A stretch of 64,000 nucleotides of DNA from Macrostomum hystrix. Its lineage: Eukaryota; Animalia; Platyhelminthes. Of this stretch, positions 11,129 through 50,133 are shown in pieces. The stretch lies in assembly GCA_950097015.1 (NCBI GenBank), contig CATNEN010000029.1:3782001-3846000 (forward strand), given 5' to 3'. How positions within the stretch are numbered: the first letter of the stretch is position 1; every line of letters begins with the position of its first letter. The notes under the pieces are model-generated. The model was given only the letters and a program-made list of their open reading frames with translations. It made no database searches and was not told the origin of the DNA. The translations under genes were made by a program, and so were the position numbers.

Positions 11129-13378
11129 ATGATCACAGACGCCGATACAATGAGCCAAAGTGACGTAACCTCCGAGCTGTTCACTGCCGTCAGATCAGAC
11201 TATGCTGAGGCCCTGAAGCGGCTGCTGCAGCTGGGCGGAGATCCCAACGCCGCTTCCATTATCGGCGACATCAAAGATGACATCATTGGTCATTGTCGGC
11301 GGCGCCAGCGACGGTTGCTGCACGCGGCGGTGTCACCCCAATGCCAACCCGCCTGCCTGCGGCTTCTGTTGGACTCCGGGGCTGATGCCGACCTCACCGA
11401 TGCCGCCGATGTCGATGAAGCTAACAACGAAGATGACGAAGATAACAGCGGCGAAGAAGAACATGTCGGCGAGACACCGCTGCACGCCGCCGCCGAAAGC
11501 TGCCGTATCAGCGGTGCCCCATGCGTGCGCGCTCTTCTGTCCGCCGGTGCCGACTGTTGGATCACCGATGATGAAGGCGACAACCCGCTGCACCGGGCCT
11601 GCCTGGTGGGCAATGCCGCAGCAGCTGCAGCCCTGCTAGAAACAGAGCCTCGACTGGCCAACTGTCCGACGATCGGGCCTGGACACGGACCGCTCACCTG
11701 CCTGCACGTGGCCGCCGCGGCCGGCGACCCCGAGCTGTTCCGCTTGCTCCTGCGCAGCGGAGCCGACCATCTGGCATTGGACGGCCGTGGCCGTGCGCCA
11801 ATCGATATCCTCCTGGCTAGCCGCGATACCGACTGTCTCGACTGCCTCGGCCGGCAATTAGCTGCGCGCCTCAGGCCGGGTTTGCGGCAGGGACAGGAGC
11901 CGCTGGAGCTGCTGTCCAGCCGGCCCGGCCGTCGCTACCTCACCCAGCTGCTCCGCATCGACACCAGCGCCGGGAGGGAGACGCCATTCCGGCCCAGCGA
12001 CCGGGTGCGGCAGGAACGGCTCGCCGGCCTGGAGGAAGTCGCCAGAGGTCCCGGCGTCTCTGCTCAACGCCTGGTTGACGCCCTGGTGGATGCGCACCAA
12101 CTGGGCCTGACGTCTGACCTGGAGCTGCCTGACTGCGCCTGGCTGATTGGCCGCTTGGCTGGCCGTGTGGGCCGTCTTGTGCTGCTGTCGCAGGAGGACG
12201 GCCAGTTGAGGCGGCTGACCGCCTGCAGGCGCCTGTGGCTGACGCTGGCTGCCCGCCTGAGGTTGCGTATCCGCCAGTTGTACTCGGCGGGCCTTCGATA
12301 TCGCAAGGCGACCGTCTCGTCGGCATCCTCAGTGGCGGCTGCCTCGGCTTCAGTTGTCGGCGGGCCTTGCCAGGCGATGCGCCGTGAACTAGCTGCCGGC
12401 TCTGCCGACGGTCGCTGGCGAGTGGAGGCCGGCCGGCTTAACAGGGCTGTGGCCCGGCTGACTGGCTTCGCGCGGTTCCGCTGTCGCGAGTCCGTTTTCC
12501 CTCACGAGACGGACGGCGTGGGTGTGCTGAGAGATCCGCTGCAGTCGCTGACTACCTGGGCGGTGCTCACTGGACGCCTGCGGCTAGTCCCGGTGCTGCT
12601 TCGTCAAGAGGAGTTCGACCTTGTGCCGCTGGCTTTGCTGTCGGCGACGCTGCTGCGAGCTCTGGCCCGTCGGTCTGAGGTGGACGACGTTTTCACCGCC
12701 GCGGCCCTCCGCGTGGCCAGCTTGTGCGAGACCATGGCAGTTCGGACGCTGCGTGCAGTGAAGGACGTTGATAGCTCCGTCGGCAACTGCCTGACCATCG
12801 CCTTCGTGAGCCAGCCGCTGCCAAACTACGCCGACTACACAGTGCTGGACCTGGCCGCCATAGGCTCTGTCACCGGCCTCATAAAGCTGGACATTGTTGA
12901 GCTGGCCACCGACATGCGCTGGTACGGCGACTTCTTCGACAGCCGCTCCTTGCCCGGCAAGTCGTCGCTAATCCGCGAGCTGCTTATTGTCAGCGGCTTC
13001 GTGCCGCCGCTGGTGCCCCTGCTGCCGCGCCTGCTGCGCCGGCTGGGCGACCCGGAGCGGCAGCGCTTTCTTGATCACATGATCGGCGACGGCGACGGTG
13101 GCAGCTGCGACGCAGATGATCAGGGGGATAGCGACGATGAAAACTATGCTGAGGTGGAGGATAAATCTGAACTAGAAACAGAGGCTGCTGACCATCGACC
13201 AGCAACTGCGACATCGGCGCCGGCGCCACCTTCAACAGGTTGGCGCGCCGAGCTATCGCTCAGCTTCGCCGATCTGCGGCGGTTCTATGATACGCCCTGT
13301 GTGAAGTTTCGCGCCAGTGTTGTGTTTTACTTTACTACCGTGGTCATGATGTCCATGATGACACTGCACGACTTCCAG
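11129..13378 (+). CDS. Ankyrin-repeat TRP channel (TRPM-like C-terminal half), exon 1: ANK repeats, MHR4-like domain, S1
   Basis: 750 codons; ANK motifs GETPLHAAA, GDNPLHRAC, LTCLHVAAA..GAD; MHR4-like PLQSLTTWAVL...LALLSATLLRALA...TVLDLA...WYG; GT donor at 13379, phase 0. Confidence 0.9.
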
Positions 13379-13422
13379 GTCAGAATGCCATAGTATTGTT
13401 TTTATAATTTCGATATTTTTCT

Positions 13423-13669
13423 CAGCTAGAACCGTGGCAGGAATCGCAGCTAGAACCGTGGCAGGAATCGCAGCTAGAACCGTGGCAGGAATCGCAGCTA
13501 GAACCGTGGCAGGAATCGCAGCTAGAACCGTGGCAGGAATCGCAGCTAGAACCGTAGCAGGAATCGCAGCTAGAACCGTGGCAGGAATCGCAGCTAGAAC
13601 CGTGGCAGGAATTGCAGCTAGAACCGTAGCAGGAATCGCAGCTAGAACCGTAGCAGGAATCGCAGCTAG
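13423..13669 (+). repeat. Minisatellite, 24-bp unit GCAGCTAGAACCGTGGCAGGAATC (TRP intron 1)
   Basis: About 10 near-identical units. Confidence 0.95.
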
Positions 13670-13716
13670 TAGGAAGGAGTGTTTGAAGCCAGTAAAAATT
13701 TTTCCGATCTCCGCAG

Positions 13717-14257
13717 GGCGGCGTCAGCAAGCTGGAGGTGGCGAGCTACGTGGCTCTCCTCGGCGTGCTGGCCGAGGAGCTGCGCGAGCTGAACGGCTGC
13801 CGGCTGCAGGGCACCCTGGGAACATACCTGGCGGACGGTTGGAACATCCTGGACCTGGTGGCAATTATCTGCGGCCTAGCGGCCTTCCTAGCACGCAGAT
13901 TCAGCTCGGACCAGTGGGACCTGCTGGGAGCCCTGATGCCTGACCACGAGCGACGCACCCGCAGCTTCGGCTACCTGTTCGTGGTGGCCGCCACACTGAT
14001 CTTCTGGATGCGCGTCCTGTTCGTGTCAGTTGTTCTTGAGTCGGTTGGAGTCAAGCTAAAGATGCTATCGCTAGTGATTAGGCGCGACTTCATCCCCTTC
14101 CTGTACATCCTGCTGGTGGTGATGGCCGGCTTCGGAATCGCCTTCGCCGCGCTGCTGTGGCCCGGCGCTGCCTACTACAGCGGCGGCCGCCGGGTGCCCA
14201 TCCCGCCTTTTGAACTTCTGTTGAACATCATCCGCAGGACCTTCTATGCCATTGTGG
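13717..14257 (+). CDS. TRP channel exon 2: S2-S5 and pore helix
   Basis: Acceptor TCTCCGCAG at 13716, in frame with exon 1; YLADGWNILDLVAII (S3), FWMRVL (S4), RDFIPFLYILLVVMAGFGIA (S5), FYAIVG; donor GTGAG at 14258, phase 1. Confidence 0.9.
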
Positions 14258-14297
14258 GTGAGAAGTCTGCTGCAAGACCCGCAGTCGCTGGGATTGG

Positions 14298-15170
14298 ATG
14301 GGATTCTCACTCTGCACAATGGGATTCTCACTCTGTACAATGGGATTCTCACTCTGTCTAATAGGATTCTCGCTCTGTACAATGGGATTCTCACTCTATC
14401 CAATGGGATTCTCAATCTATCCAATGGGATTCTCACTCTATCCAATGAGATTCTCACTCTATCCAATGGGATTCTCAATCTATCCAACGGGATTCTCAAT
14501 CTATCCAATGGGATTCTCACTCTATCCAATGAGATCCTCACTCTATCCAATGAGATTCTCACTCTATCCAATGAGATTCTCACTCTATCCAATGAGATTC
14601 TCACTCTATCCAATGAGATTCTCACTCTATCCAATGAGATTCTCACTCTATCCAATGAGATTCTCACTCTATCCAATGGGATTCTCAATCTATCCAACGG
14701 GATTCTCAATCTATCCAATGGGATTCTCACTCTATCCAATGAGATTCTCACTCTATCCAATGAGATTCTCACTCTATCCAATGGGATTCTCAATCTATCC
14801 AATGGGATTCTCACTCTATCCAATGAGATTCTCACTCTATCCAATGAGATCCTCACTCTATCCAATGAGATTCTCACTCTATCCAATGGGATTCTCAATC
14901 TATCCAACGGGATTCTCAATCTATCCAATGGGATTCTCACTCTATCCAATGAGATTCTCACTCTATCCAATGGGATTCTCAATCTATCCGATGGGATTCT
15001 CACTCTATCCAATGGGATTCTCAATCTATCCGATGGGATTCTCACTCTATCCAATGGGATTCTCTCTCTATCCAATGAGATTCTCACTCTATCCAATGGG
15101 ATTCTCAATCTATCCGATGGGATTCTCACTCTATCGAATGGGATTCTCACTCTATCCAATAGGATTCTCT
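14298..15170 (+). repeat. Minisatellite, 21-bp unit GGGATTCTCACTCTATCCAAT (TRP intron 2)
   Basis: About 42 units; variant pattern repeats at 210 bp. Confidence 0.95.
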
Positions 15171-15247
15171 CAATCGAACAAAATTTTCACTCAATCCATT
15201 GAGTCCATCACTTGCTGTAAGCAATGCCTAACTCAACCCATCCGCAG

Positions 15248-15966
15248 GCGAGTATAGCCTCGAAGAGTTAAGCAATGTCTGCGACTACAGTGCAAGCAGC
15301 AATGAGACTGAAACGGTGAAAGGAGAAATGTGTGTCGCCCAGCCCGGTTCCCACCTGGTACAGTACGGCCTGCTGGTCGTGTACATTGTCATCATGCAGA
15401 TTCTTCTCATGAACGTCGTCGTGGCGCTATTCAGCAAGACGGTGGACTCCGTGGATGCCGAGTCCCGCTCGATGTGGCTGATCGGACGCTACGAGCTCAA
15501 CGAGGAGTTCGCGGGCCGCTCGGCCATCCCGCTGCCGTTCAACCTGCTGATGGAGCTGTGGAACCTCCTGTCCTGGCTACTCCGCCAGCTGCTTACCGGC
15601 CGCGGCGCGCTCCGCCCGACTGAAGCCGCAGCCTCGGCCAAGTCGCCTGGCAAGCTGGCTGAGCAGCGGAGGCGGAGCGCCGTGTACGCCATCTACCTGT
15701 TCTACCAGGCCGCCACAATGCGGCGCCTTCGGCCGCGCCTCGACGGCTTCAGCGGCGGCGACGAAGACGGCGCCGAGCTGAGTGGCGAAGCGGCCGCGCT
15801 GGTCGAACAGCTCGGCGAAGTCGGCGCCTCCCAGGTCGGCATGCTGGACGAGCTGGAGGCACAGAGCCGCGAGCTGGGAGTTTTCGCCAGGCAGCTTAAC
15901 TGGCTGCTGGGCGGCCGGCACACGGCTGCCGTGGGCGTCTCGAAGACCGAGAATCTGCGGATCTGA
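15248..15966 (+). CDS. TRP channel exon 3: pore loop, S6, TRP helix, C-terminus
   Basis: Acceptor TCCGCAG at 15247 completes GEY in phase 1; S6 YIVIMQILLMNVVVALFS; TRP helix SMWLIGRYELNEEF..R..IPLPFNLL; stop TGA 15964-15966. Confidence 0.9.
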
Positions 15967-16253
15967 GATTTAGGGATCTGGGATGCGGATCTGAGATTTA
16001 GGGATCTGGGATGCGGATCTGAGATTTAGGGATCTGGGATGTGGATCTGAGATTTGGGGATCTGGGATGTGGATCTGAGATTTAGGGATCTGGGATGCGG
16101 AGCTGAGATTTGGGGATCTGGGATGCGGATCTGAGATTTGCGGATCTGAGATTTGGGGAACTGGGATGCGGATCTGAGATTTAGGGATCTGGGATGTGAA
16201 TCTGAGATTTAGGGATCTGGGATGCGGAGCTGAGATTTGGGGATCTGGGATGC
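15957..16253 (+). repeat. Minisatellite, 28-bp unit GATCTGAGATTTAGGGATCTGGGATGCG
   Basis: About 10 units starting in the last codons of the TRP ORF. Confidence 0.93.
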
Positions 16254-17021
16254 GACCCTCCAGTCCATGGACTGAACAGTTGTACGCAGCCATTGGAATA
16301 GAAGCGGCTGTGCCACTAGCTTTACATCTGCTCTAATTATTTCAGGTATCATTTCAATGCCATTATATTCTTAAGCTCGAAAAACTTGGCTTATAATATT
16401 ATGCAACTTTTCCTGATCGTTTTCTCCTAATTTTTTTCCTATACAACGGTGACCGATATTTGGATACTGTAAACGTCTATCCCTTCAATGAACACGGAGC
16501 CAATCAGATAAAGTTAAAAGTACAGTGCGCATAAAAAAAGATTTGCAAGCTCGATTCGCTTATAACTATCACTTCATGATTTTATATTCTTGCTTTGAAC
16601 TGTAGGCTTATGGTATGCCTTATGAGCCTACACCAATAATAATAATAGTACTAATAGTAGCATAATTCTTATTTCTAAATGCTGCTTCTTCACTTTACGA
16701 AGATCTTTACTTCACTTTGCTGGGGTGTTCAGCACCCACCAAATTGGCTGTCATAAATCATGCTTGCTTTGTCGGTAGAAGCTAGGGCTTGTACAAAAGT
16801 GCATTTCGGTTCTGGGGTCGGAGCTGGCATTTCAAAGTCTCTGACTGCTATCGATTGTCTTTGTTAAGAAAAGCCTCGAGTTTTGTGTTCTTTGCGCAAA
16901 TGACTAGTGGTCATAGTTGATGCAGCCTTTTAATTTAGCGCATCCGTTAGATGGGATCTGCATTCATTATTGGATTTTTGGAATAGGAATTTTTATCTGC
17001 TTTTTTAGGTGTCATTGTTTG

Positions 17022-17650
17022 AAGTGTCAGGGATATCAAATGTCAGGGATATAAAGTGTCAGGGATATAAAGTGTCAGGGATATAAAGTGTCAGGTTTAT
17101 CAAGTGTCAGGTTTATATAGTGTCAGGGTTATCAAGTGTCTGGCTTATCAAGTTTCAGGGTTATCAAATGTCAGGGTTATCAAGTGTCAGGGTTATCAAA
17201 TGTCAGGGTTATCAAATGTCAGGGTTATCAAATGTCAGGGTTATCAAGTGTCAGGGTTATCAAATGTCAGGGTTATCAAATGTCAGGGTTATAAAGTGTC
17301 AGGGTTATCAAGTGTCAGGGTTATCAAGTGTCAGGGTTATCAAATGTCAGGGTTATCAAATGTCAGGGTTATCAAATGTCAGGGTTATCAAATGTCAGGG
17401 TTATCAAGTGTCAGGGTTATCAAATGTCAGGGTTATCAAATGTCAGGGTTATCAAGTGTCAGGGTTATCAAGTGTCAGGGTTATCAAGTGTCAGGGTTAT
17501 CAAATGTCAGGGTTATCAAATGTCAGGGTTATCAAATGTCAGGGTTATCAAATATCAGGGTTATCAAATGTCAGGGTTATCAAGTGTCAGGGTTATCAAA
17601 TGTCAGGGTTATCAGATGTCAGGGTTATCAAGTATCAGGGTTGTAAAGTG
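17022..17650 (+). repeat. Minisatellite, 16-bp unit TGTCAGGGTTATCAAA/G
   Basis: About 39 units. Confidence 0.95.
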
Positions 17651-17796
17651 TCATTTTTTATTTCAGTGCATCAATTATAATTCAGTCGATTGCTGCAAGC
17701 TAATAGGCTCGCTTGCCTATTAAGTGTAGTCTATGGCCACGACATGCCATCCAGCGGCACAACAATATTTCAAAGCGTATCGAACGTGAGCTGGTG

Positions 17797-20950: not shown

Positions 20951-21050
20951 ATGAGCCAACAGTCACACCGTGATCACCTGCTGCCACGCCTGCCGACTGA
21001 GGAGGTCGAGGTGCTGCGGCTGGCCAAGCAGCAACAGGTGGAAATGACCA
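20951..21050 (+). CDS. AGBL2/AGBL3: Cytosolic carboxypeptidase 2/3-like, exon 1 (model: 20951-21050, 22294-23085, 28191-28386, 33667-33979, 34121-34304, 34594-34745, 35002-35483, 36139-36353, 37013-37247, 38152-38284, 39805-...)
   Basis: ATG at 20951; donor GTGAGT at 21051, phase 1, compatible with exon 2; exons 1-10 total 2802 nt in one open frame. Confidence 0.72.
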
Positions 21051-21059
21051 GTGAGTGTT

Positions 21060-22250
21060 CAGCTCACCCTGTCACAGCTCACCCTGTCACAGCTCACCCT
21101 GTTACAGCTCACCCTGTCACAGCTCACCCTGTCACAGCTCACCCTGTCACAGCTCACCTTGCCACAGCTCACCCTGTCACAGCTCACTTTGCCACAGCTC
21201 ACCCTTTCACAGCTCACCATGTCACAGCTCACCCTGTCACAGCTCACCCTGTCACAGCTCACCCTGTCACAGCTCACCCTGTCACAGCTCACCATGTCAC
21301 AGCTCAACATGTCACAGCTCACCCTGTCACAGCTCACCCTGTCACAGCTCACCCTGTCACAGCTCACCCTGTTACAGCTCAACATGTCACAGCTCACCCT
21401 GTCACAGCTCACCCTGTCACAGCTCACCCTGTCACAGCTCACCCTGTTACAGCTCACCCTGTCACAGCTCACCCTGTCACAGCTCACCATGTCACAGCTC
21501 ACCCTGTCACAGCTCACCATGTCACAGCTCAACATGTCACAGCTCACCCTGTTACAGCTCACCATGTCACAGCTCACCATGTCACAGCTCACCATGTCAC
21601 AGCTCAACATGTCACAGCTCAACATGTCACAGCTCACCCTGTCACAGCTCACCCTGTCACAGCTCACCCTGTCACAGCTCACCCTGTTACAGCTCACCCT
21701 GTCACAGCTCACCCTGTCACAGCTCACCATGTCACAGCTCACCCTCTCACAGCTCACCCTGTCACAGCTCACCCTTTCACAGCTCACCATGTCACAGCTC
21801 ACCCTGTCACAGCTCACCCTGTCACAGCTCACCCTCTCACAGCTCACCCTGTCACAGCTCACCCTGTCACAGCTCACCATGTCACAGCTCACCCTGTCAC
21901 AGCTCACCATGTCACAGCTCACCCTGTCACAGCTCACCCTGTCACAGCTCACCCTGTCACAGCTCACCCTGTCACAGCTCACCCTGTCACAGCTCACCCT
22001 GTCACAGCTCACCTTGCCACAGCTCAACCTGTCACAGCTCACCCTGTCACAGCTCACCCTGTCACAGCTCACCCTGTCACAGCTCACCTTGCCACAGCTC
22101 AACCTGTCACAGCTCACCCTGTTACAGCTCAACATGTCACAGCTCACCCTGTCACAGCTCACCATGTCACAGCTCACCCTCTCACAGCTCACCCTGTCAC
22201 AGCTCACCCTGTCACAGCTCACCCTGTCACAGCTCACCTTGCCACAGCTC
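21060..22250 (+). repeat. Minisatellite, 15-bp unit CTCACCCTGTCACAG (CCP intron 1)
   Basis: About 79 units; stop-free in several frames, producing the spurious 446-707 aa ORFs. Confidence 0.97.
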
Positions 22251-22293
22251 AAGAAACCTTCCTCCCAACCCCCTTCAACCTCTCCTCCGGCAG

Positions 22294-23085
22294 GCAATTC
22301 TGAGTGGCGCGAGCGTCTCCGGCGCGACCTGGAGGCGGACATCAGCCGACGGGTGCGCGAGGCGCTGGACACGCCGCCCGCGGAGCGGCAGAGGCGCAAC
22401 CGAGAGCTCGCCAGACTTCGGGCAGCAGCCCAGAAAGAGGAGCAGCTGGCTCAGTTTCACAAGGCCGCACGCGCGCTGGCGGCGGCCACAGCGGCGGCCG
22501 CAGCGGTCGCCAACGGCTCCGAGAGGCTGCAGCGTCCGGCAGCAACGGCGGGACCGTCAGGCGACTCAGGGATCGGAAATCGAGCGTCGAGGTCGAATCG
22601 TTATCGCCACTTAGTTGGTGGCGGCTTCGACGAGGAAAATAACTCTGACAATGGCGACTATGACGACGACTACGAAGAGGAGGACACGACGAACGATGAA
22701 GAGGACGAAGAGTCGGCGGGCGCGGCCAGGACGATGGCGGCTCTCGCCAGGCGGCGTCCTCAGCCAGTGTCGTCGCTGCCAGCGTTTCGCCTGGGCGCGG
22801 AGGCGATGCGGCACTTCGGCGACTTGACGCCGGACGAGAAGCTGCGCCTGTTTGCCAACTTCACTCGAGACGGCTTCCGCGAAGCGGCGCGCAACGGCCG
22901 CCTGCCTGACGGCTCCCCGCTGACGCTTCTGCCAGACGGTCGCTACCGGGACCAGTTCGGCATCGCGCGCGACTCCCGCGGCCCCTTCTGGCCCCGCGAC
23001 TTCGGTCCCTGCCACCCGACGCCGAGCCACCGACGACTGGGCTGCCCCGGCCCGGAGCCGCTGCTGCTGCCGTTGAAGAATCCCG
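22294..23085 (+). CDS. AGBL2/AGBL3: CCP2/3-like exon 2 (N-terminal extension, acidic tract)
   Basis: Acceptor CTCCTCCGGCAG at 22293; GC-rich open frame NSEWRERLRR...GPFWPRDFGP...LKNP; donor GTAAG at 23086, phase 1. Confidence 0.8.
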
Positions 23086-23866
23086 GTAAGACTGATGAAT
23101 TCGTGATTAAATGCAACACTGATTTATTTGCAGTAGAAAGATGGCCCCATGGCCTGCTGGAGTACATTGTGTGAACTAAAAAACAGTATTGTAGTTCATT
23201 TTTTATATAAAAATATTAATTAGATGCATTCTAACCTTCTGACATTTTCATCAGCTGACAAAGCCAAATCGAATGACAGAAGAAAGCCAGGTTAACATCT
23301 ATTCGATTCACTTTTTATATCTGTCTGCGAGTAGTTCACACTGACTTGTTCACCAATTTTCTTTCACGAAGCACAAAGGCTATTGTTGTCTTCCGTTTCT
23401 TGGGGCGTCAAAGTAAAAGTGCAAAAGCGAATTTTGTAGAACAAGATCAGGGTCGCTTTGCCGCTCACACATTCCTGAGTATGCTTGCCCAGGAACAATA
23501 GTGCACACATAGCTGCTGCCTACCCACCCGCGGGATATTGCTATTGGCGTCACAGAATCTTCCTCTTATGAATTAGACATGACCAATCTTGTTGTAGCTG
23601 TCTAGACAGGACAGTCACTTGACTTTGACATGCCACCGTGCACCGGGTTTTGTGTTAGCCCCTGGTCAAGCATGTTCTAGCTGCCTGATGTTGGCTAAGC
23701 TAACAATAAAGTCAAGCCTTGTCACCCTTAGCTAACAAGGCGGACGGAATGTAGATTGTAATATGATCAATGCGAGACAATATCAATGAGCAGACAGAGA
23801 TGAAGTGGCTCAACTTCTGGTAGCTTCTGTTCGAAATACACTGTATGTTCTAGCCAGGGTCTTAAG

Positions 23867-24510: not shown

Positions 24511-25299
24511 TTCCAACGCTTATCGGATTTAGAATCAGACGAGCCAATACTATTCTATTGTTTGAGTCAGCAGCGAGTGAACTGTTGGAGGCTTTGCATT
24601 CTGAGTGCAGTGTAAATAGGCTCACAGACTGGGGCACAATGCTCTGGTATTTTACCAGACGGAGGCGGAGGGACTAAGCTTATGGGATTTCTCGCTAGAG
24701 GCATTTTTGCCAGCACTCAACTAGTGCTGCCCCACACAAAGGAATTTAGCAATGAATTCAATGGCCCATTTATTAATTTTATTAATAACGACTGGTCCTT
24801 TGTTGATTGAAGACAGCACAATCAGTATCTCGATAAAATAGGCTTAAAGTAAAGTTTTTCCAATATCAGGAAATTGCCCTCGAAAAGCGAGCTGGGCTTT
24901 TACTAGCGGATTCACTCGGGCTTATTGCGATATTAGAATGCTAACATTCTTAATTAAGTGCTTGCCTACAAGCAAGGCTCATTAGGTACTCTACTCAAAT
25001 TTGTCTGCTCTGTGACTCAAGCCTATTGTACTGGCCTAGTCTGTTCTGCCTTCACACGTCTATCTCTCTGGCTGCTTCTTCTGCTAGAGGCAGAATTTAT
25101 TTCAATCCCGTTTCCTCGCTTGGTGCAGACAGGAAGAGAGAAAATTTTCACTTGGACACGAAAAAAGCTGTTCTGCGTTTTAATTTGGAAAATTTTCGAA
25201 TCAAATAAAACCTGTCCGACTAAGAGTACTCTGCACTGCAGGGTCAACTCACACGCTTCAGAATTCTGTTGAAAATATACTCAAAAGACATGCAGGAGG

Positions 25300-26285
25300 G
25301 ATGAGACAGGGGAGATATGAGACACAGGAGAGATGAGACACAGGAGAGATGAGACACAGGAGAGATGAGACACAGGAGAGATGAGACACAGAAGAGATGA
25401 GACAGGGGGGATGAGACAGGGGGGAGATGAGACAGGGGGAGATGAGACAGGGGGGAGATGAGACAGGGGGAGATGAGACAGGGGGGAGATGAGACACGGG
25501 AGATGAGACACGGGAGATGAGACAGAGGGAGATGAGACACGGGGGATGAGACAGGGGGAGATGAGACACGGGAGATGAGACACGGGAGATGAGACAGAGG
25601 GAGATGAGACACGGGGGATGAGACAGGGGGGAGATGAGACAGGGGGAGATGAGACAGGGGGGAGATGAGACAGGGGGAGATGAGACACGGGGGAGATGAG
25701 ACAGGGGGAGATGAGACAGGGGAGAGATGAGACACGGGAGAGATGAGACACGGGAGAGATGAGACACGGGAGAGATGAGACACGGGAGAGATGAGACACG
25801 GGAGAGATGAGACACGGGAGAGATGAGACACGGGAGAGATAAGACATGGGAAGAGATGAGACACGGGAAGAGATGAGACACGGGAGAGATGAGACACGGG
25901 AGAGATGAGACACGGGAGAGATGAGACACGGGAGAGATGAGACACGGAAGAGATGAGACACGGGAGAGATGAGACAAAGGAGAGATGAGACACAGAAGAG
26001 ATGAGACACGGGAGAGATGAGACAAAGGAGAGATGAGACACAGAAGAGATGAGACACGGGAGAGATGAGACAAAGGAGAGATGAGACACAGAAGAGATGA
26101 GACAGGAGAGAGATGAGACATGGGAAGAGATGAGACACTGGAGAGATGAGACACGGGAGAGATGAGACACGGGAGAGATGAGACACGGGAGAGATGAAAC
26201 AGGGCGAGATGAGACACGGGAGAGATGAGACAAAGGAGAGATGAGACACAGAAGAGATGAAACATGGGAGAGATGAGACAGATAT
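25300..26285 (+). repeat. Minisatellite, 14-17-bp unit GGGAGAGATGAGACAC
   Basis: About 60 purine-rich units. Confidence 0.95.
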
Positions 26286-26839
26286 AAATAAGATAGGGGA
26301 GAGATGACATGGCTAATATGATTAATATCTCTCATAAGTTTAATGCTCGGAAGAGAGACATGGGATCAGTCAGGCAGTTGTTGGCAGTCTTACCAAAACG
26401 GTAAATATTAGCCATCTACATTGGGGACTCAAAGATAGGGGCAAACATCGGCCAGCCAGCGAACACTGAGCAGGCAGACAAACTCAATTCCTTCCTAGAA
26501 ACTGCGCACTAGAAGAATGTTATTTTATATTTTATACTAATGCACTTTTATGTAAGCCTTTATAAAATTCACCTACCGCGGTAAAAAAGCAGCCCGAAGA
26601 TTTGCTTTGAATTCACTGAGTAATCTGGCGCAGTCAGTTTCTTCTTTTGTTCTTCCTTTCTGCGATTTTTTCTCCCGCTTCTTGTCGCCGGTGTGAAAAC
26701 AGTTTTTTGTGAGGCCCGCCGCCTCCGCGGCTGTTTTGTCTGCTTTTACTCTGACTTGCACTTTCATTTAGACATTTTATTCCTGCGTGATTCTCGGTTG
26801 TTCTTCCAACTTGAATGCGAGAAAATCCCCTCTAATGAA

Positions 26840-30368: not shown

Positions 30369-31711
30369 CTAACAGGATGAGTGATAGATCCATGCCTTGG
30401 CCCGCTTGACCGAGTCTCTGGCCCCCTCAACAAACTTGCCAACCTCGCCGCGAAGGAGCAGGTGCGAAGTGTGGCCGTAGTAGCGATGAAAGTTTTCCGA
30501 CACGATGGGCACAGTGACGGCGACAACAATGAGACCCACCAGGCTGCACAGGATGGCGAGAATTCTGCCTTCAACGGTGCTAGGCGTGATGTCTCCATAG
30601 CCCACTGTAGTGATGGTGATCATCGCCCAGTAGTAGCCGTGGAACATTGTGCTGACCTTGTCCTTGTTGTCCTTGTCGGAGCGTTCCATCAGGAAGAAGA
30701 CTGTGCCAAACAGGAAGGTGGCGGTGAACACCAGCAGAGCCACCACCAGTAGGTCACTGAGACCCTTCAGCAGAGTGTAGGCCAGCACCTGGATGCCCAT
30801 GAAGTGGCGGATCAGGCGGAACACGCGGAAGAACAGAGCCACGCTGAGCAGTTCGAAAAGCCAGCCAATGGGACTGCGCAGGTCCAGCCGGCTGCCGGTC
30901 ATGCGGAACAGCAGGTAGCCGTAGAGCGGCACTAGCGAGGCGACGTCGTTCCATGTGTGCGGCGAGCGGACGAACTTGGCTCGGTTGGGCGCCAGCAGAG
31001 CCCGCAGCATCAGGTCCAGGGTGAAGAGCAGGGTGAAGCTGCTCTGGCAGATCACGTAGGCCATGTCGGCCCGGGCTGCGTCGGACAGTTCGCCGTTGGG
31101 CAGCGTGCAGTTGGCGCCGCGGTGGCCGCTTCGATGTCCCCAGTCGCTGCACTCGTGCGGTGGGTCCTTGGTGTACATGACGGCCGAGGCGATGGAGCAG
31201 AGGAACATCAGCAGGGCATAGAAGGCGGCGGGAATGGAGCTGCACGGCTGGTTCAAACCGGTCCACAGCCATCGCAGCGGCGTCCTCTTTCCGCGGCTCT
31301 GGTCCTGGTCGCCTGCTTGTACCAGCTCATCGTCAGCCGGATCAGCGAGTGCGCTGGCCTCGAATTCGTCCAGCAGCACCTTCCAGCGCTTGCTGTCCAG
31401 CGCCGTGTGCATGCAGCAGGACTCCAGGCAGTCAGGTGTCACCTTAACATTCCAGTGCTGCAGCTCTTTCTCTAGCAGCGGGCCGCACAGGTAGTTTGGC
31501 AGGTGCATCTGACTGTGCCGGTGATAGTTGAGCAGCAGGCGAAACACTACCGGATCCAAATCGTAGTACTTCTCGCCGTTGGGACAGTTCACAGATTTCT
31601 GAGTGTCTTCCAGAAGCTTAAGCAGGTCCTCGTACGGATGAGTTTTCAATACCCGCTCGGGAAAGTACATTCTTTCGCCTCTCATGTTCAAGGTCAGCAT
31701 TCGCTGCGGTA

Positions 31712-31742
<31 letters not shown>

Positions 31743-31781
31743 CTCCCTGGCGTGGATTGTTAAATGATTTTGCGACTGCAT
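30369..31781 (-). CDS. Shaw: Intronless Shaw/Kv3-like voltage-gated K+ channel subunit, 470 aa, nested antisense in CCP intron 3
   Basis: T1 domain with Zn motif HLPNYLC...CC; six hydrophobic segments; S4 FELLSVALFFRVFRLIRH aligns with Shaw LEFFSIIRIMRLFKLTRH; filter TITTVGYGD; Q9 tract at the N-terminus. Confidence 0.93.
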
Positions 31782-47925: not shown

Positions 47926-48625
47926 ACTGCGTCAAACATCTACCTGGACAGAGCTGACTTACACCCCTGTGTGTGCTCATGTGAGCTGGTCGGATCGAAC
48001 AGAACTGCTTTCTCACGGGCCTACAATTAGATGACTAAAAAAAGAGGAAAATTAGGCAGAGGAGTGGAAGGATAGAAAGCAAAGCGTGGAGTATTTTGCT
48101 GGCTAACTTGGCGTGTTCTAAGCTGCAAAAGTTCTACACAAAACTCGGAGATTGGCATCGGACAAGCGATGACAGATAGATAGACCCGGCCGGCTGCTTA
48201 TCTAAACTTTGCTAGCCTACCTGCCCTTCACCAGCCGCCCTGAGCTCACCGCAGAGTCATCACAGCTGGCGGCACAGAATAGGAAGTCCGAAGTCTCTCT
48301 AAAGAAGTGCTTCCTGAGTCATACAAAGAATGCACACGACTTGTCCATTAGAGCCGGGTGCAGCTTGGGGTGGACATGCATGGCAAGGAGCTACTGGACT
48401 GGAGTGGCTTGCACTGCTGGCTGCTTTTGTCAGATTGGGGACAAACTCAACAGCACAAACTAGCAATGCGCCTGCGATTTGAGTGGCATTCAAGGATAGG
48501 ATAAGAGAGTAGTAGAAAGAATGTGAGCTTGCTGAATTCAAGGTCAATAGAAAGCTATGCAGTTGTGATGAAAAACTTTATCAGAATAAAGCTTGAGGAA
48601 GTGCTTGGGAATACTTCAAAAACCC

Positions 48626-50133
48626 ACTCTCAACCGACAACCCAGTCTCAACCGACAACCCATTCTCAATCGACAACCCAGTCTCAACCGACAACCCAGT
48701 CTCAACCGACAACCCATTCTCAATCGACAACCCATTCTCAATCGACAACCCAGTCTCAACCGACAACCCAGTCTCAACCGACAACCCATTCTCAACCGAC
48801 AACCCAGTCTCAATCGACAACCCAGTCTCAACCGACAACCCACTCTCAATCGACAACCCAGTCTCAACCGACAACCCAGTCTCAACCGACAACCCAGTCT
48901 TAACCGACAACCCACTCTCTATCGACAACCCAGTCTCAACCGACAACCCAGTCTCAACCGACAACCCACTCTCTATCGACAACCCACTCTCCTCCGGCAA
49001 CCCAGTTTCTATCGACAACCCAGTCTCAATCGACAACCCATACTCAATCGACAACCCAGTCTCAACCGACAACCCAGTCTCAATCGACAACCCAGTCTCA
49101 ACCGACAACCCAGTCTCAACCGACAACCCAGTCTCAATCGACAACCAGTCTCAATCGACAACCCAGTCTCAACCGACAACCCAGTCTCAATCGACAACCC
49201 ACTCTCCTTCGGCAACCCAGTTTCTATCGACAAGCCAGTCTCTATCGACAACCCAGTCTCTATCGACAACCCAGTCTCAACCGACAACCCAGTCTCAATC
49301 GACAACCCACTCTCCTTCGGCAACCCAGTTTCTATCAACAACCCAGCCTCTATCGACAACCCAGTCTCTATCGACAACCCAGTCTCAACCGACAACCCAG
49401 TCTCAATCGACAACCCACTCTCCTTCGGCAACCCAGTTTCTATCGACAACCCACTCTCCTTCGGCAACCTAGTCTCTATCGACAACCCAGTCTCTATCGA
49501 CAAGCCAGTCTTAATCGATAACCCAGTCTTAATCGACAACCCACTCTCCTTCGGCAACCCAGTTTCTATCTAAAACCCAATCTCTATCGACAACCCCGTC
49601 TCAACCGACAACCCAGTCTCAATTGACAACCCACTCTTTCTCGACAACCCACTCTCCATCGACAACCCACACTCCTTCGACAACCCACACTCCATCGACA
49701 ACCCACACTCCTTCGACAACCCACACTCCTTCGACAACCCACACTCCTTCGACAACCCACACTCCTTCGACAACCCACACTACATCGACAACCCACACTC
49801 CTTCGACAACCCACACTCCTTCGACAACCCACACTCCTTCGACAACCCACACTCCTTCGACAACCCACACTCCTTCGACAACCCACACTCCTTCGACAAC
49901 CCACTCTTCATCGACAACCCACTCTCCATCGACAACCCACACTCCCTCGACAACCCACACTCCTTCGACAACCCACACTCCATCGACAACCCACACTCCT
50001 TCGACAACCCACACTCCTTCGACAACCCACACTCCATCGACAACCCACACTCCTTCGACAACCCACACTCCATCGACAACCCACTCTCCTTCGACAACCC
50101 ACTCTCCTTCGACAACCCACTCTCCTTCGACAA
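48626..50133 (+). repeat. Minisatellite, 18-bp unit CGACAACCCAGTCTCAAC grading into CGACAACCCACACTCCTT
   Basis: About 83 units; two sub-domains switching near 49620. Confidence 0.96.

Follow-up and report, generated by a model that had tools for sequence, protein, structure and literature searches.

A three-exon gene of Macrostomum hystrix that probably encodes a TRPM-like channel subunit with ankyrin repeats in place of the SLOG domain

The window analysed here, a stretch of 64,000 nucleotides from the flatworm Macrostomum hystrix, contains at positions 11129-15966 of the forward strand an intact three-exon gene encoding about 1169 amino acids. Its exons and introns are as follows, the junctions being predicted from consensus splice signals and from collinearity with the Macrostomum lignano orthologue P0001 (a slash marks the splice junction).

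11129-13378, forward strand: exon 1 (2250 bp, 750 codons; open reading frame and donor site CAG/GTCAGA, phase 0), with the start codon, ankyrin repeats, MHR3-like and MHR4-like regions, acidic loop, pre-S1 and S1
13379-13716, forward strand: intron 1 (GT...AG), largely occupied by about 10 copies of a 24-bp minisatellite (13423-13669)
13717-14257, forward strand: exon 2 (acceptor CCGCAG/, donor G/GTGAGA, phase 1), with S2 (EELRE), S3 (DGWNILD), S4, the S4-S5 linker, S5 and the pore helix (RRTFYAIV)
14258-15247, forward strand: intron 2 (GT...AG), largely occupied by about 41 copies of a 21-bp minisatellite (14298-15169)
15248-15966, forward strand: exon 3 (acceptor CCGCAG/, stop codon at 15964-15966), with the selectivity filter (G/EY), pore loop, S6, TRP helix (WLIGRYELNEEF...PLPF), C-terminal helices and stop

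The translations of the three exons are collinear, from Met to stop, with P0001 (1176 aa), to which they are 41-55% identical. More precisely, exon 1 is collinear with residues 1-721 of the orthologue, the junction of exons 2 and 3 spells FYAIVG/EY, and the stop of exon 3 is collinear with the end of P0001. A tblastn search of the window returned these three exons only, and we found in it no counterpart of 3a/3b, the pair of alternative channel exons in Opisthorchis. Long open reading frames upstream and downstream were considered as extra exons and rejected, as they are translations of tandem repeats.

The encoded protein begins with the regions listed below, all of them in exon 1.

11156-11881, forward strand: array of six ankyrin repeats (residues about 10-251), the second and third of which are separated by an acidic insert (about 83-116)
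11993-12328, forward strand: MHR3-like helical region (residues about 289-400), alike in fold only
12428-13048, forward strand: MHR4-like region (residues about 434-640), with the motifs PLQSLTTWAVL, LALLSATLLRALA and TVLDLA...WYG
13079-13234, forward strand: acidic low-confidence loop (residues about 651-702, pLDDT below 50) ahead of pre-S1
13241-13378, forward strand: pre-S1 helix and S1 (residues about 705-750; helices 705-720 and 723-748 in the AlphaFold, AF2, model), aligned to pre-S1/S1 of TRPM

A first-pass annotation, made by a model from the sequence alone, had counted five to six ankyrin repeats at residues about 14-230. Six are confirmed, over residues about 10-251, both by Pfam (Ank_2, E 2e-26; Ank, 6e-19) and by the AF2 model, where they form six helix-pair repeats; the region also matches DARPin and ankyrin chains in the PDB and ankyrin proteins in Foldseek. 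The TRPM-type MHR4 that the annotation placed after the repeats is borne out by the family profile, which in this region matches TRPM chains only among PDB sequences, with E values from 4e-21 (nvTRPM2) to 1e-10. The homology of this linker to TRPM is significant only with the family profile and not with single-sequence phmmer, whose best PDB match has an E value of 0.28 (TRPM2). For the window protein by itself, the match to the Pfam TRPM2-like domain (PF25508, residues 466-576) is weak (E 0.011); it lies at or slightly over the cutoff in the paralogues P0003-P0008 and P0010, and slightly under it in P0001 and P0002.

The MHR3-like region has no sequence match beyond the Macrostomum subclade, and positions 1-178 of the family profile have no sequence match in the PDB. 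The evidence for it is structural. Using VIA-align, model residues from about 30 on were placed on TRPM residues from about 404-435, and the aligned part (MHR3/4 and S1, 263-341 residues) spans TRPM residues about 404-880 with Z values of 10.7-15.8, while TRPY1, NOMPC and TRPC reach at most 8.2 (NOMPC 6.9, TRPC 6.2-6.5). Since Foldseek on the whole exon 1 model gave ankyrin proteins only, the non-ankyrin part was folded separately, and its Foldseek search also matches TRPM. As judged from the modelled fold, MHR3 is kept alongside MHR4, which corrects the first-pass annotation, where MHR1-3 were all listed as missing.

The rest of the annotation's description of the domains holds. A TRPM-type S1-S6 core and TRP helix are present in exons 2 and 3. 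Exon 2 matches Pfam Ion_trans (9e-8) and has the TRPM2 chanzyme as top PDB match (5e-6), and the top PDB matches of exon 3 are TRPM4 (5e-9) and TRPM2/5/8, with TRPV3 at only 4e-4. The motifs that it had quoted are all present: YLADGWNILD, PLQSLTTWAVL, LALLSATLLRALA and the TRP helix are found in the window protein, and the alignment shows conservation of the motifs in S2, S3, the filter and the TRP helix. As it had also stated, SLOG (MHR1/2) is missing, both by Pfam (no LSDAT_euk) and by a home-made SLOG HMM, and Pfam detects no NUDT9 or other C-terminal enzyme domain; beta strands of a Rossmann-like fold are absent from the AF2 model. The protein consists of a TRPM body (MHR3, MHR4, pre-S1, S1-S6, TRP helix and helical C-terminus) with six ankyrin repeats replacing SLOG/MHR1-2, for which the label "domain-swapped" is plausible.

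Canonical TRPM channels (nvTRPM2, TRPM3, TRPM7, TRPM2 and TRPM4/5/8) share with the window protein the MHR3/MHR4 fold, pre-S1, S1-S6, the position of the G-E/Q filter, the TRP helix (W...RY.L..E[FY]..R) and the positions of the Ca2+-site motifs in S2/S3. However, they have the SLOG-type MHR1/2 that defines TRPM where the window protein has six canonical ankyrin repeats, a NUDT9 or kinase domain is absent from the latter, and their TRP box 1 reads WKFQR instead of the degenerate WLIGR. TRPS (soromelastatin; C. elegans ced-11) is, like the window protein, a divergent TRPM-related lineage, but its domain content is the reverse, with SLOG and Nudix domains and no detectable ankyrin repeats (Himmel 2020).

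Considering that TRPN/NOMPC, TRPA1, TRPC and TRPV also have an N-terminal ankyrin array before a six-helix TRP channel, one could take the gene for a member of this group 1 (TRPC, TRPN, TRPA or TRPV) and its resemblance to TRPM for convergent or superficial. Yet the linkers and cores of these channels match far worse. The structural check of the linker proposed in the first-pass annotation (AlphaFold/Foldseek), extended here with VIA-align, clearly separates TRPM from TRPC/NOMPC (Z 10.7-15.8 vs 6.2-6.9), the MHR3/4 module is TRPM-specific, the PDB sequence matches put TRPM first (by orders of magnitude for exon 3), and we saw no TRPC/N/A/V signature in the matches sampled among the best 150 profile matches. 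We regard a group-1 origin as extremely improbable, and on the same PDB, fold and profile evidence the assignment to a TRPM-like lineage rather than to TRPC, TRPN or TRPA stands. The minisatellites filling both introns could in turn suggest a pseudogene, or an assembly chimera merely resembling one gene. Against this, the frames are open in all three exons, the introns are bounded by canonical, in-phase splice sites, the functional motifs are kept along with the Met-to-stop collinearity at 41-55% identity, and many flatworm species show the same architecture; such an artefact is very improbable. The 2250-bp reading frame of exon 1, collinear with P0001, likewise supports the annotation's view that a fusion lying in this single exon is no splicing mis-prediction.

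To place the gene, we used a maximum likelihood tree (IQ-TREE; supports given as UFboot/SH-aLRT) that is unrooted and contains no TRPC/N/A/V or labelled TRPS sequences; the window exons were entered as separate rows, and P0001 served as full-length proxy. The window exons fall in an ankyrin clade that includes the schistosome TRPM_MCLZ (100/100). Within it, they group with P0001 (100/92) and with Macrostomum (97/88), and the parasite TRPM_MCLZ side is supported at 100/97. On that side, the African schistosome protein P0209 carries, with matching numbering, 8/8 of the residues published as landmarks of Sm.TRPM_MCLZ. The gene thus belongs to a subclade that is expanded in free-living macrostomids and is sister to the parasite TRPM_MCLZ orthologues; because of this sister position, it is a co-orthologue or paralogue of the parasite gene and not its one-to-one orthologue. 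In the best 150 matches of an exhaustive profile search, SLOG is present in most of the long sequences (70 by our own HMM), about 17 have ankyrin repeats and lack SLOG, and the weakest are truncated TRPMs by Pfam scans; none of the 150 could be identified as a TRP from outside TRPM. A look-alike search in the ESM Atlas gave only short TRPM2-domain clusters (rotifers, molluscs).

These results lead us to conclude that the locus very likely encodes the subunit of a cation channel that is built as a tetramer and belongs to the flatworm "TRPM-like" family, as the group was named by Rohr et al. (2026, PMC12861061). Its characterised member is the schistosome TRPM_MCLZ (Smp_333650), the target of meclonazepam. 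The architecture, in which the first-pass annotation had seen a domain-swapped or intermediate lineage, is not new, being described for this clade in papers of 2023-2026. The flatworm TRPM_MCLZ is a channel that "lacks the NH2-terminal MHR1/2 or SLOG domain", contains modules of ankyrin repeats and is devoid of an enzyme domain (Sprague et al. 2024, PMC11731825). A search of relatives, which the annotation had suggested, found the same architecture in many flatworm species, M. lignano included. The window gene adds a free-living member to a family that was already described. What is new here is the multi-copy expansion in free-living flatworms, the canonical TRPM G-E pore filter and the altered residues of the drug pocket.

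The origin of the ankyrin clade is less straightforward. In the unrooted tree, it attaches between the flatworm SLOG-type TRPMs and the remaining SLOG-type sequences, on a branch of 0.56 substitutions per site (100/100) that splits it from all SLOG-bearing sequences. This long and fully supported branch, on which the midpoint root lands (we gave the latter no weight), would fit a TRP lineage of its own, old and sister to TRPM plus TRPS, that survives in flatworms only. Such a lineage would have retained an ancestral ankyrin array that was swapped for SLOG in TRPM/TRPS, and would merit the rank of a family rather than the label of divergent TRPM. The about equal similarity of the family profile to alpha- and beta-type TRPM structures in the PDB is consistent with it, as are the degenerate ankyrin repeats inside MHR3/4 that PMC13143021 cites from Burroughs 2015. 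However, the named members of the clade are all flatworms, and loss in every other phylum would therefore be needed; a long stem branch is expected anyway from the fast sequence evolution of flatworms; and the TRPM/TRPS ancestor was inferred to be ankyrin-free (Himmel 2020). Moreover, flatworm TRPMs are the closest neighbours of the clade in the tree, and two of them have ankyrin repeats ahead of SLOG, which suggests that SLOG was lost within flatworms. An old independent lineage is hence unlikely. Quite unlikely, too, is a related reading in which the ankyrin-MHR3/4 clade is a surviving early stem branch of TRPM/TRPS with the ancestral array, the cryptic MHR3/4 repeats of ordinary TRPMs are its remnant, and the flatworm TRPMs with both ankyrin repeats and SLOG represent the step of SLOG insertion, not of loss. 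If this were true, the ankyrin-free ancestor inferred in the literature would have to be given up.

The function can be proposed by analogy with the parasite channel. The signal of Sm.TRPM_MCLZ needs Ca2+ entry, its current-voltage relation is a straight line reversing near 0 mV, and its ligand pocket lies in the VSLD (PMC10788528). The window protein may likewise conduct cations non-selectively, Ca2+ included, and may be gated through a ligand cavity that S1-S4 form together with the TRP helix. It is probably modulated by cytosolic Ca2+, because the acidic or amide positions are kept in S2 (E, and E replacing Q) and S3 (N, D); we take these to be the positions that hold Ca2+ in TRPM2/4/5/8. 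With SLOG and NUDT9 absent, nucleotide gating of the ADP-ribose type should therefore be impossible, and the ring of ankyrin repeats and MHR3-4 could instead be a docking or regulatory platform.

Domain order is the same as in the TRPM_MCLZ of Schistosoma mansoni and its trematode, monogenean and cestode orthologues: ankyrin repeats, TRPM-type cytosolic helical region, S1-S6, TRP helix and a short C-terminus without enzyme domain. The pocket differs. The window protein keeps E868 (S2), R943 (S4) and Y1038 (pore), but has Ser for H827, Tyr for H831, Val for Y864, Glu for Q871, Phe for H946 and Phe for Y1117. H831 (S1), R943 (S4) and Y1117 (TRP) are conserved across 63 parasite orthologues, with the exception of Phe at Y1117 in Gyrodactylus (Rohr 2026, PMC12861061), and only R943 of the three is kept here. 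The S4 position holds Phe, as in the meclonazepam-insensitive cestode channels, and we thus predict from the sequence a low or absent sensitivity to the drug. Since two of the three (near-)conserved pocket residues differ and S4 has this Phe, the pharmacology of the parasite channel cannot be transferred to this one. The pore filter reads IVGEY, vs IFEVS in parasite TRPM_MCLZ, and selectivity may therefore differ as well.

Through TRPM_MCLZ, which meclonazepam hits in schistosomes, the family is already important as a drug target. The cited literature on it samples parasites only, which mostly have one gene, whereas the free-living macrostomid subclade is multi-copy and adds many intact paralogues. 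These offer natural sequence variants of both ligand pocket and pore (His-His vs Ser/Tyr in S1, G-E filter vs FEVS), in an animal that is tractable for knock-down and expression mapping; other Macrostomum paralogues retain the His-His pair. Their study could aid the search for a physiological agonist and reveal how SLOG gave way to the ankyrin array. The gene structures are partly alike. Both the window gene and TRPM_MCLZ have three coding exons, but the channel is split over all three in the window gene and lies entirely in exon 3 in trematodes, and the window protein is shorter (about 1169 vs about 1380 aa).

The ankyrin-bearing TRPM-like gene of the window is real, and it adds a paralogous member from a free-living species to a flatworm TRPM-like family that is already known. 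Reading frames give three open stretches on the forward strand, which are set out here with the other features of the region.

Features of the window
11129-13378, + strand, exon 1 of the channel gene (2250 bp; donor CAG/GTCAGA, phase 0)
13423-13669, minisatellite, 24 bp x 10, in one intron of the gene
13717-14257, + strand, exon 2 (acceptor CCGCAG/; donor G/GTGAGA, phase 1)
14298-15169, minisatellite, 21 bp x 41, in one intron of the gene
15248-15966, + strand, exon 3 (acceptor CCGCAG/; stop codon 15964-15966)
15956-16254, minisatellite, 28 bp units
17025-17653, minisatellite, 16 bp x 39
30369-31781, - strand, intronless 470-aa ORF with BTB_2 (T1) and Ion_trans domains

The predicted splicing rests on consensus splice sites and on collinearity with P0001, the Macrostomum lignano orthologue (1176 aa), which aligns from Met to stop with the three exon translations. 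This agrees with the first-pass annotation, which had held that the ankyrin-TRPM fusion is not a splicing mis-prediction. Joining exons 2 and 3 restores the Gly codon of FYAIVG/EY, and with it the pore motif FYAIVGEY reported there, in a protein of about 1169 aa. A tblastn search of relatives against the whole window returned these three exons and no further gene pieces; there is therefore no hidden upstream SLOG exon, downstream NUDT9 exon or alternative channel exon.

The exons were analysed singly, each as its own sequence. Pfam places ankyrin repeats within residues 1-230 (Ank_2, 2e-26) and Ion_trans in exons 2 and 3, finds the TRPM2-like domain PF25508 weakly (E 0.011, residues 466-576), and detects neither SLOG (LSDAT_euk) nor NUDIX. 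As modelled by AlphaFold (mean pLDDT 76), residues 10-251 of exon 1 form six ankyrin repeats, each a helix pair, in line with the 5-6 repeats of the first-pass annotation, and an acidic insert lies behind repeat 2; the region that follows is all-helical, and Rossmann-like strands are absent from this model. Searched against the PDB, a profile built from 25 family members over the N-terminal half without its ankyrin part matched TRPM chains only (nvTRPM2 at 4e-21, then TRPM1, 3, 7, 2, 8, 4, 5), all in the MHR4 and pre-S1/S1 part, in keeping with the TRPM-type MHR4 originally proposed. The best PDB match of exon 2 is the TRPM2 chanzyme (5e-6), and that of exon 3 is TRPM4 (5e-9), with TRPV3 as the first non-TRPM match (4e-4). 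When the model of residues 260-750 (pLDDT 77, pTM 0.75) was compared with about 48,000 representative chains, the best twelve matches were all TRPM channels (Z 10.7-15.8, 263-341 residues aligned), whereas TRPY1 (8.2), NOMPC (6.9) and TRPC (6.2-6.5) scored lower; Foldseek agrees for the non-ankyrin model. Since the matches span TRPM residues ~404-880, that is MHR3, MHR4, pre-S1 and S1, the ankyrin array stands in for MHR1/2 only, with MHR3 kept in the fold and unrecognisable in sequence. The initial statement that SLOG/MHR1-3 and NUDT9 are missing thus holds for SLOG, NUDIX and MHR1/2, but not for MHR3.

Two M. lignano proteins that share this Pfam set came from a word-based search, and an exhaustive profile search of 1.84 billion representatives gave 1326 matches. 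All of the best 150 were annotated by home-made ANK and SLOG HMMs, and samples of them by Pfam. They form two groups, proteins with ankyrin repeats and no SLOG versus SLOG-bearing TRPM-type proteins, and many of the remainder are short fragments with neither domain; no TRPC, TRPN, TRPA or TRPV signature occurred in the sampled matches. Among these best 150, the ankyrin group has at least nine clusters from M. lignano, members from Opisthorchis, Dicrocoelium and Schistocephalus, and a few whose taxon is unknown; a Dicrocoelium-seeded search added schistosome, fasciolid, paragonimid and cestode members. The Opisthorchis viverrini gene models P0011 and P0172 have one ankyrin region followed by two tandem channel domains. 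They probably join mutually exclusive exons, as the channel exons of Opisthorchis are duplicated (3a/3b; Rohr et al. 2026, PMC12861061).

This layout has been described in flatworms before (PMC10788528, PMC11731825, PMC12861061), the case that the first-pass annotation had named as counting against its reading. Smp_333650 of Schistosoma mansoni was identified as TRPM_MCLZ, the meclonazepam target, with three exons, an N-terminus of ankyrin-like repeats, a signal that requires Ca2+ entry and a linear I-V relation reversing near 0 mV (Park et al., JBC, PMC10788528). It has ankyrin modules in place of MHR1/2 or SLOG and no enzyme domain (Sprague et al. 2024, PMC11731825), an architecture restated in a 2026 PLoS Pathogens review. 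TRPM_MCLZ is found in every parasitic flatworm, in a clade adjoining TRPMs for which the label 'TRPM-like' was proposed (Rohr et al. 2026, PMC12861061). The literature searched contained no mention of it together with free-living flatworms. Himmel et al. 2020 reported TRPM and TRPS to be without ankyrin repeats and inferred an ankyrin-free ancestor; at least 12 of the 14 phyla sampled there are other than flatworms.

The schistosome proteins in our set are TRPM_MCLZ, since P0209, from an African schistosome cluster, carries H827, H831, Y864, E868, R943, H946, Y1038 and Y1117 at the exact published numbering, and in the protein of S. mekongi, an Asian species, the H946-equivalent position is Tyr, as published for Asian schistosomes. 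The unrooted tree (IQ-TREE, LG+C20+F+G4 PMSF; 91 rows, 328 columns, pre-S1 to TRP helix) had window exons 2 and 3 as separate rows and omitted fragments lacking both domains, the long-branch rows P0111, P0121, P0112, P0132 and P0054, and also P0173 and P0204; quick trees were built as well. Support (UFboot/SH-aLRT) is 100/100 for the ankyrin clade, 100/97 for its parasite TRPM_MCLZ side, 97/88 for the side of Macrostomum plus the window, and 100/92 for the window exons with P0001. The neighbouring clade of flatworm SLOG-type TRPMs has 99/92, and all other SLOG-type rows 100/99.

In that neighbouring clade, P0017 of M. lignano and P0102 of Clonorchis sinensis, whose cluster includes an Opisthorchis member, carry ankyrin repeats ahead of SLOG (Pfam order ANK, SLOG, TRPM2-like, Ion_trans). 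At the P0017 locus (L001:3001-7809), a single exon spans the ankyrin end and the SLOG start, introns are short, and six exons 340-610 bp apart encode residues 1-700, the ankyrin and SLOG parts. This speaks for a real gene and against a fused model. Such ANK+SLOG TRPMs could be an intermediate towards the ankyrin-only architecture. As these two proteins have ANK ahead of SLOG and all named members of the ankyrin clade are flatworms, we favour a route within flatworms that first put ankyrin repeats ahead of SLOG and later dropped SLOG. An older origin of the clade, before flatworms, is the less favoured reading, and one that an unrooted tree still accommodates.

The window protein differs from TRPM_MCLZ in the ligand pocket: H827, H831, Y864 and E868 correspond to Ser, Tyr, Val and Glu, R943, H946, Y1038 and Y1117 to Arg, Phe, Tyr and Phe, and Gln871 to Glu. 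The Ser/Tyr in S1 (13241-13378) is common to the window protein and P0001; at these positions, most of the rest of the family has a conserved, pocket-lining His-His pair, among them other Macrostomum paralogues and every parasite TRPM_MCLZ. The filter region reads IVGEY, as in ordinary TRPMs (IYGEL, MFGDF), whereas parasite TRPM_MCLZ has IFEVS. In the alignment, WN..D in S3 and the Glu of the TRP helix are retained. Since these S2/S3 positions coordinate Ca2+ in TRPM2/4/5/8 structures, modulation of the window channel by Ca2+ would be a reasonable expectation.

Minisatellites (24 bp x 10 and 21 bp x 41) make up most of the two introns of the gene, and minisatellite sequence begins right at its stop codon. 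These arrays produce long spurious ORFs on both strands. The long ORFs at 20951-23174, 25244-26335 and 48593-49573 have low-complexity Pfam matches only (pentapeptide, decapeptide, extensin-like); rather than genes, they look like translated tandem repeats. From its domains, the ORF at 30369-31781 is a predicted Kv-type potassium channel subunit.
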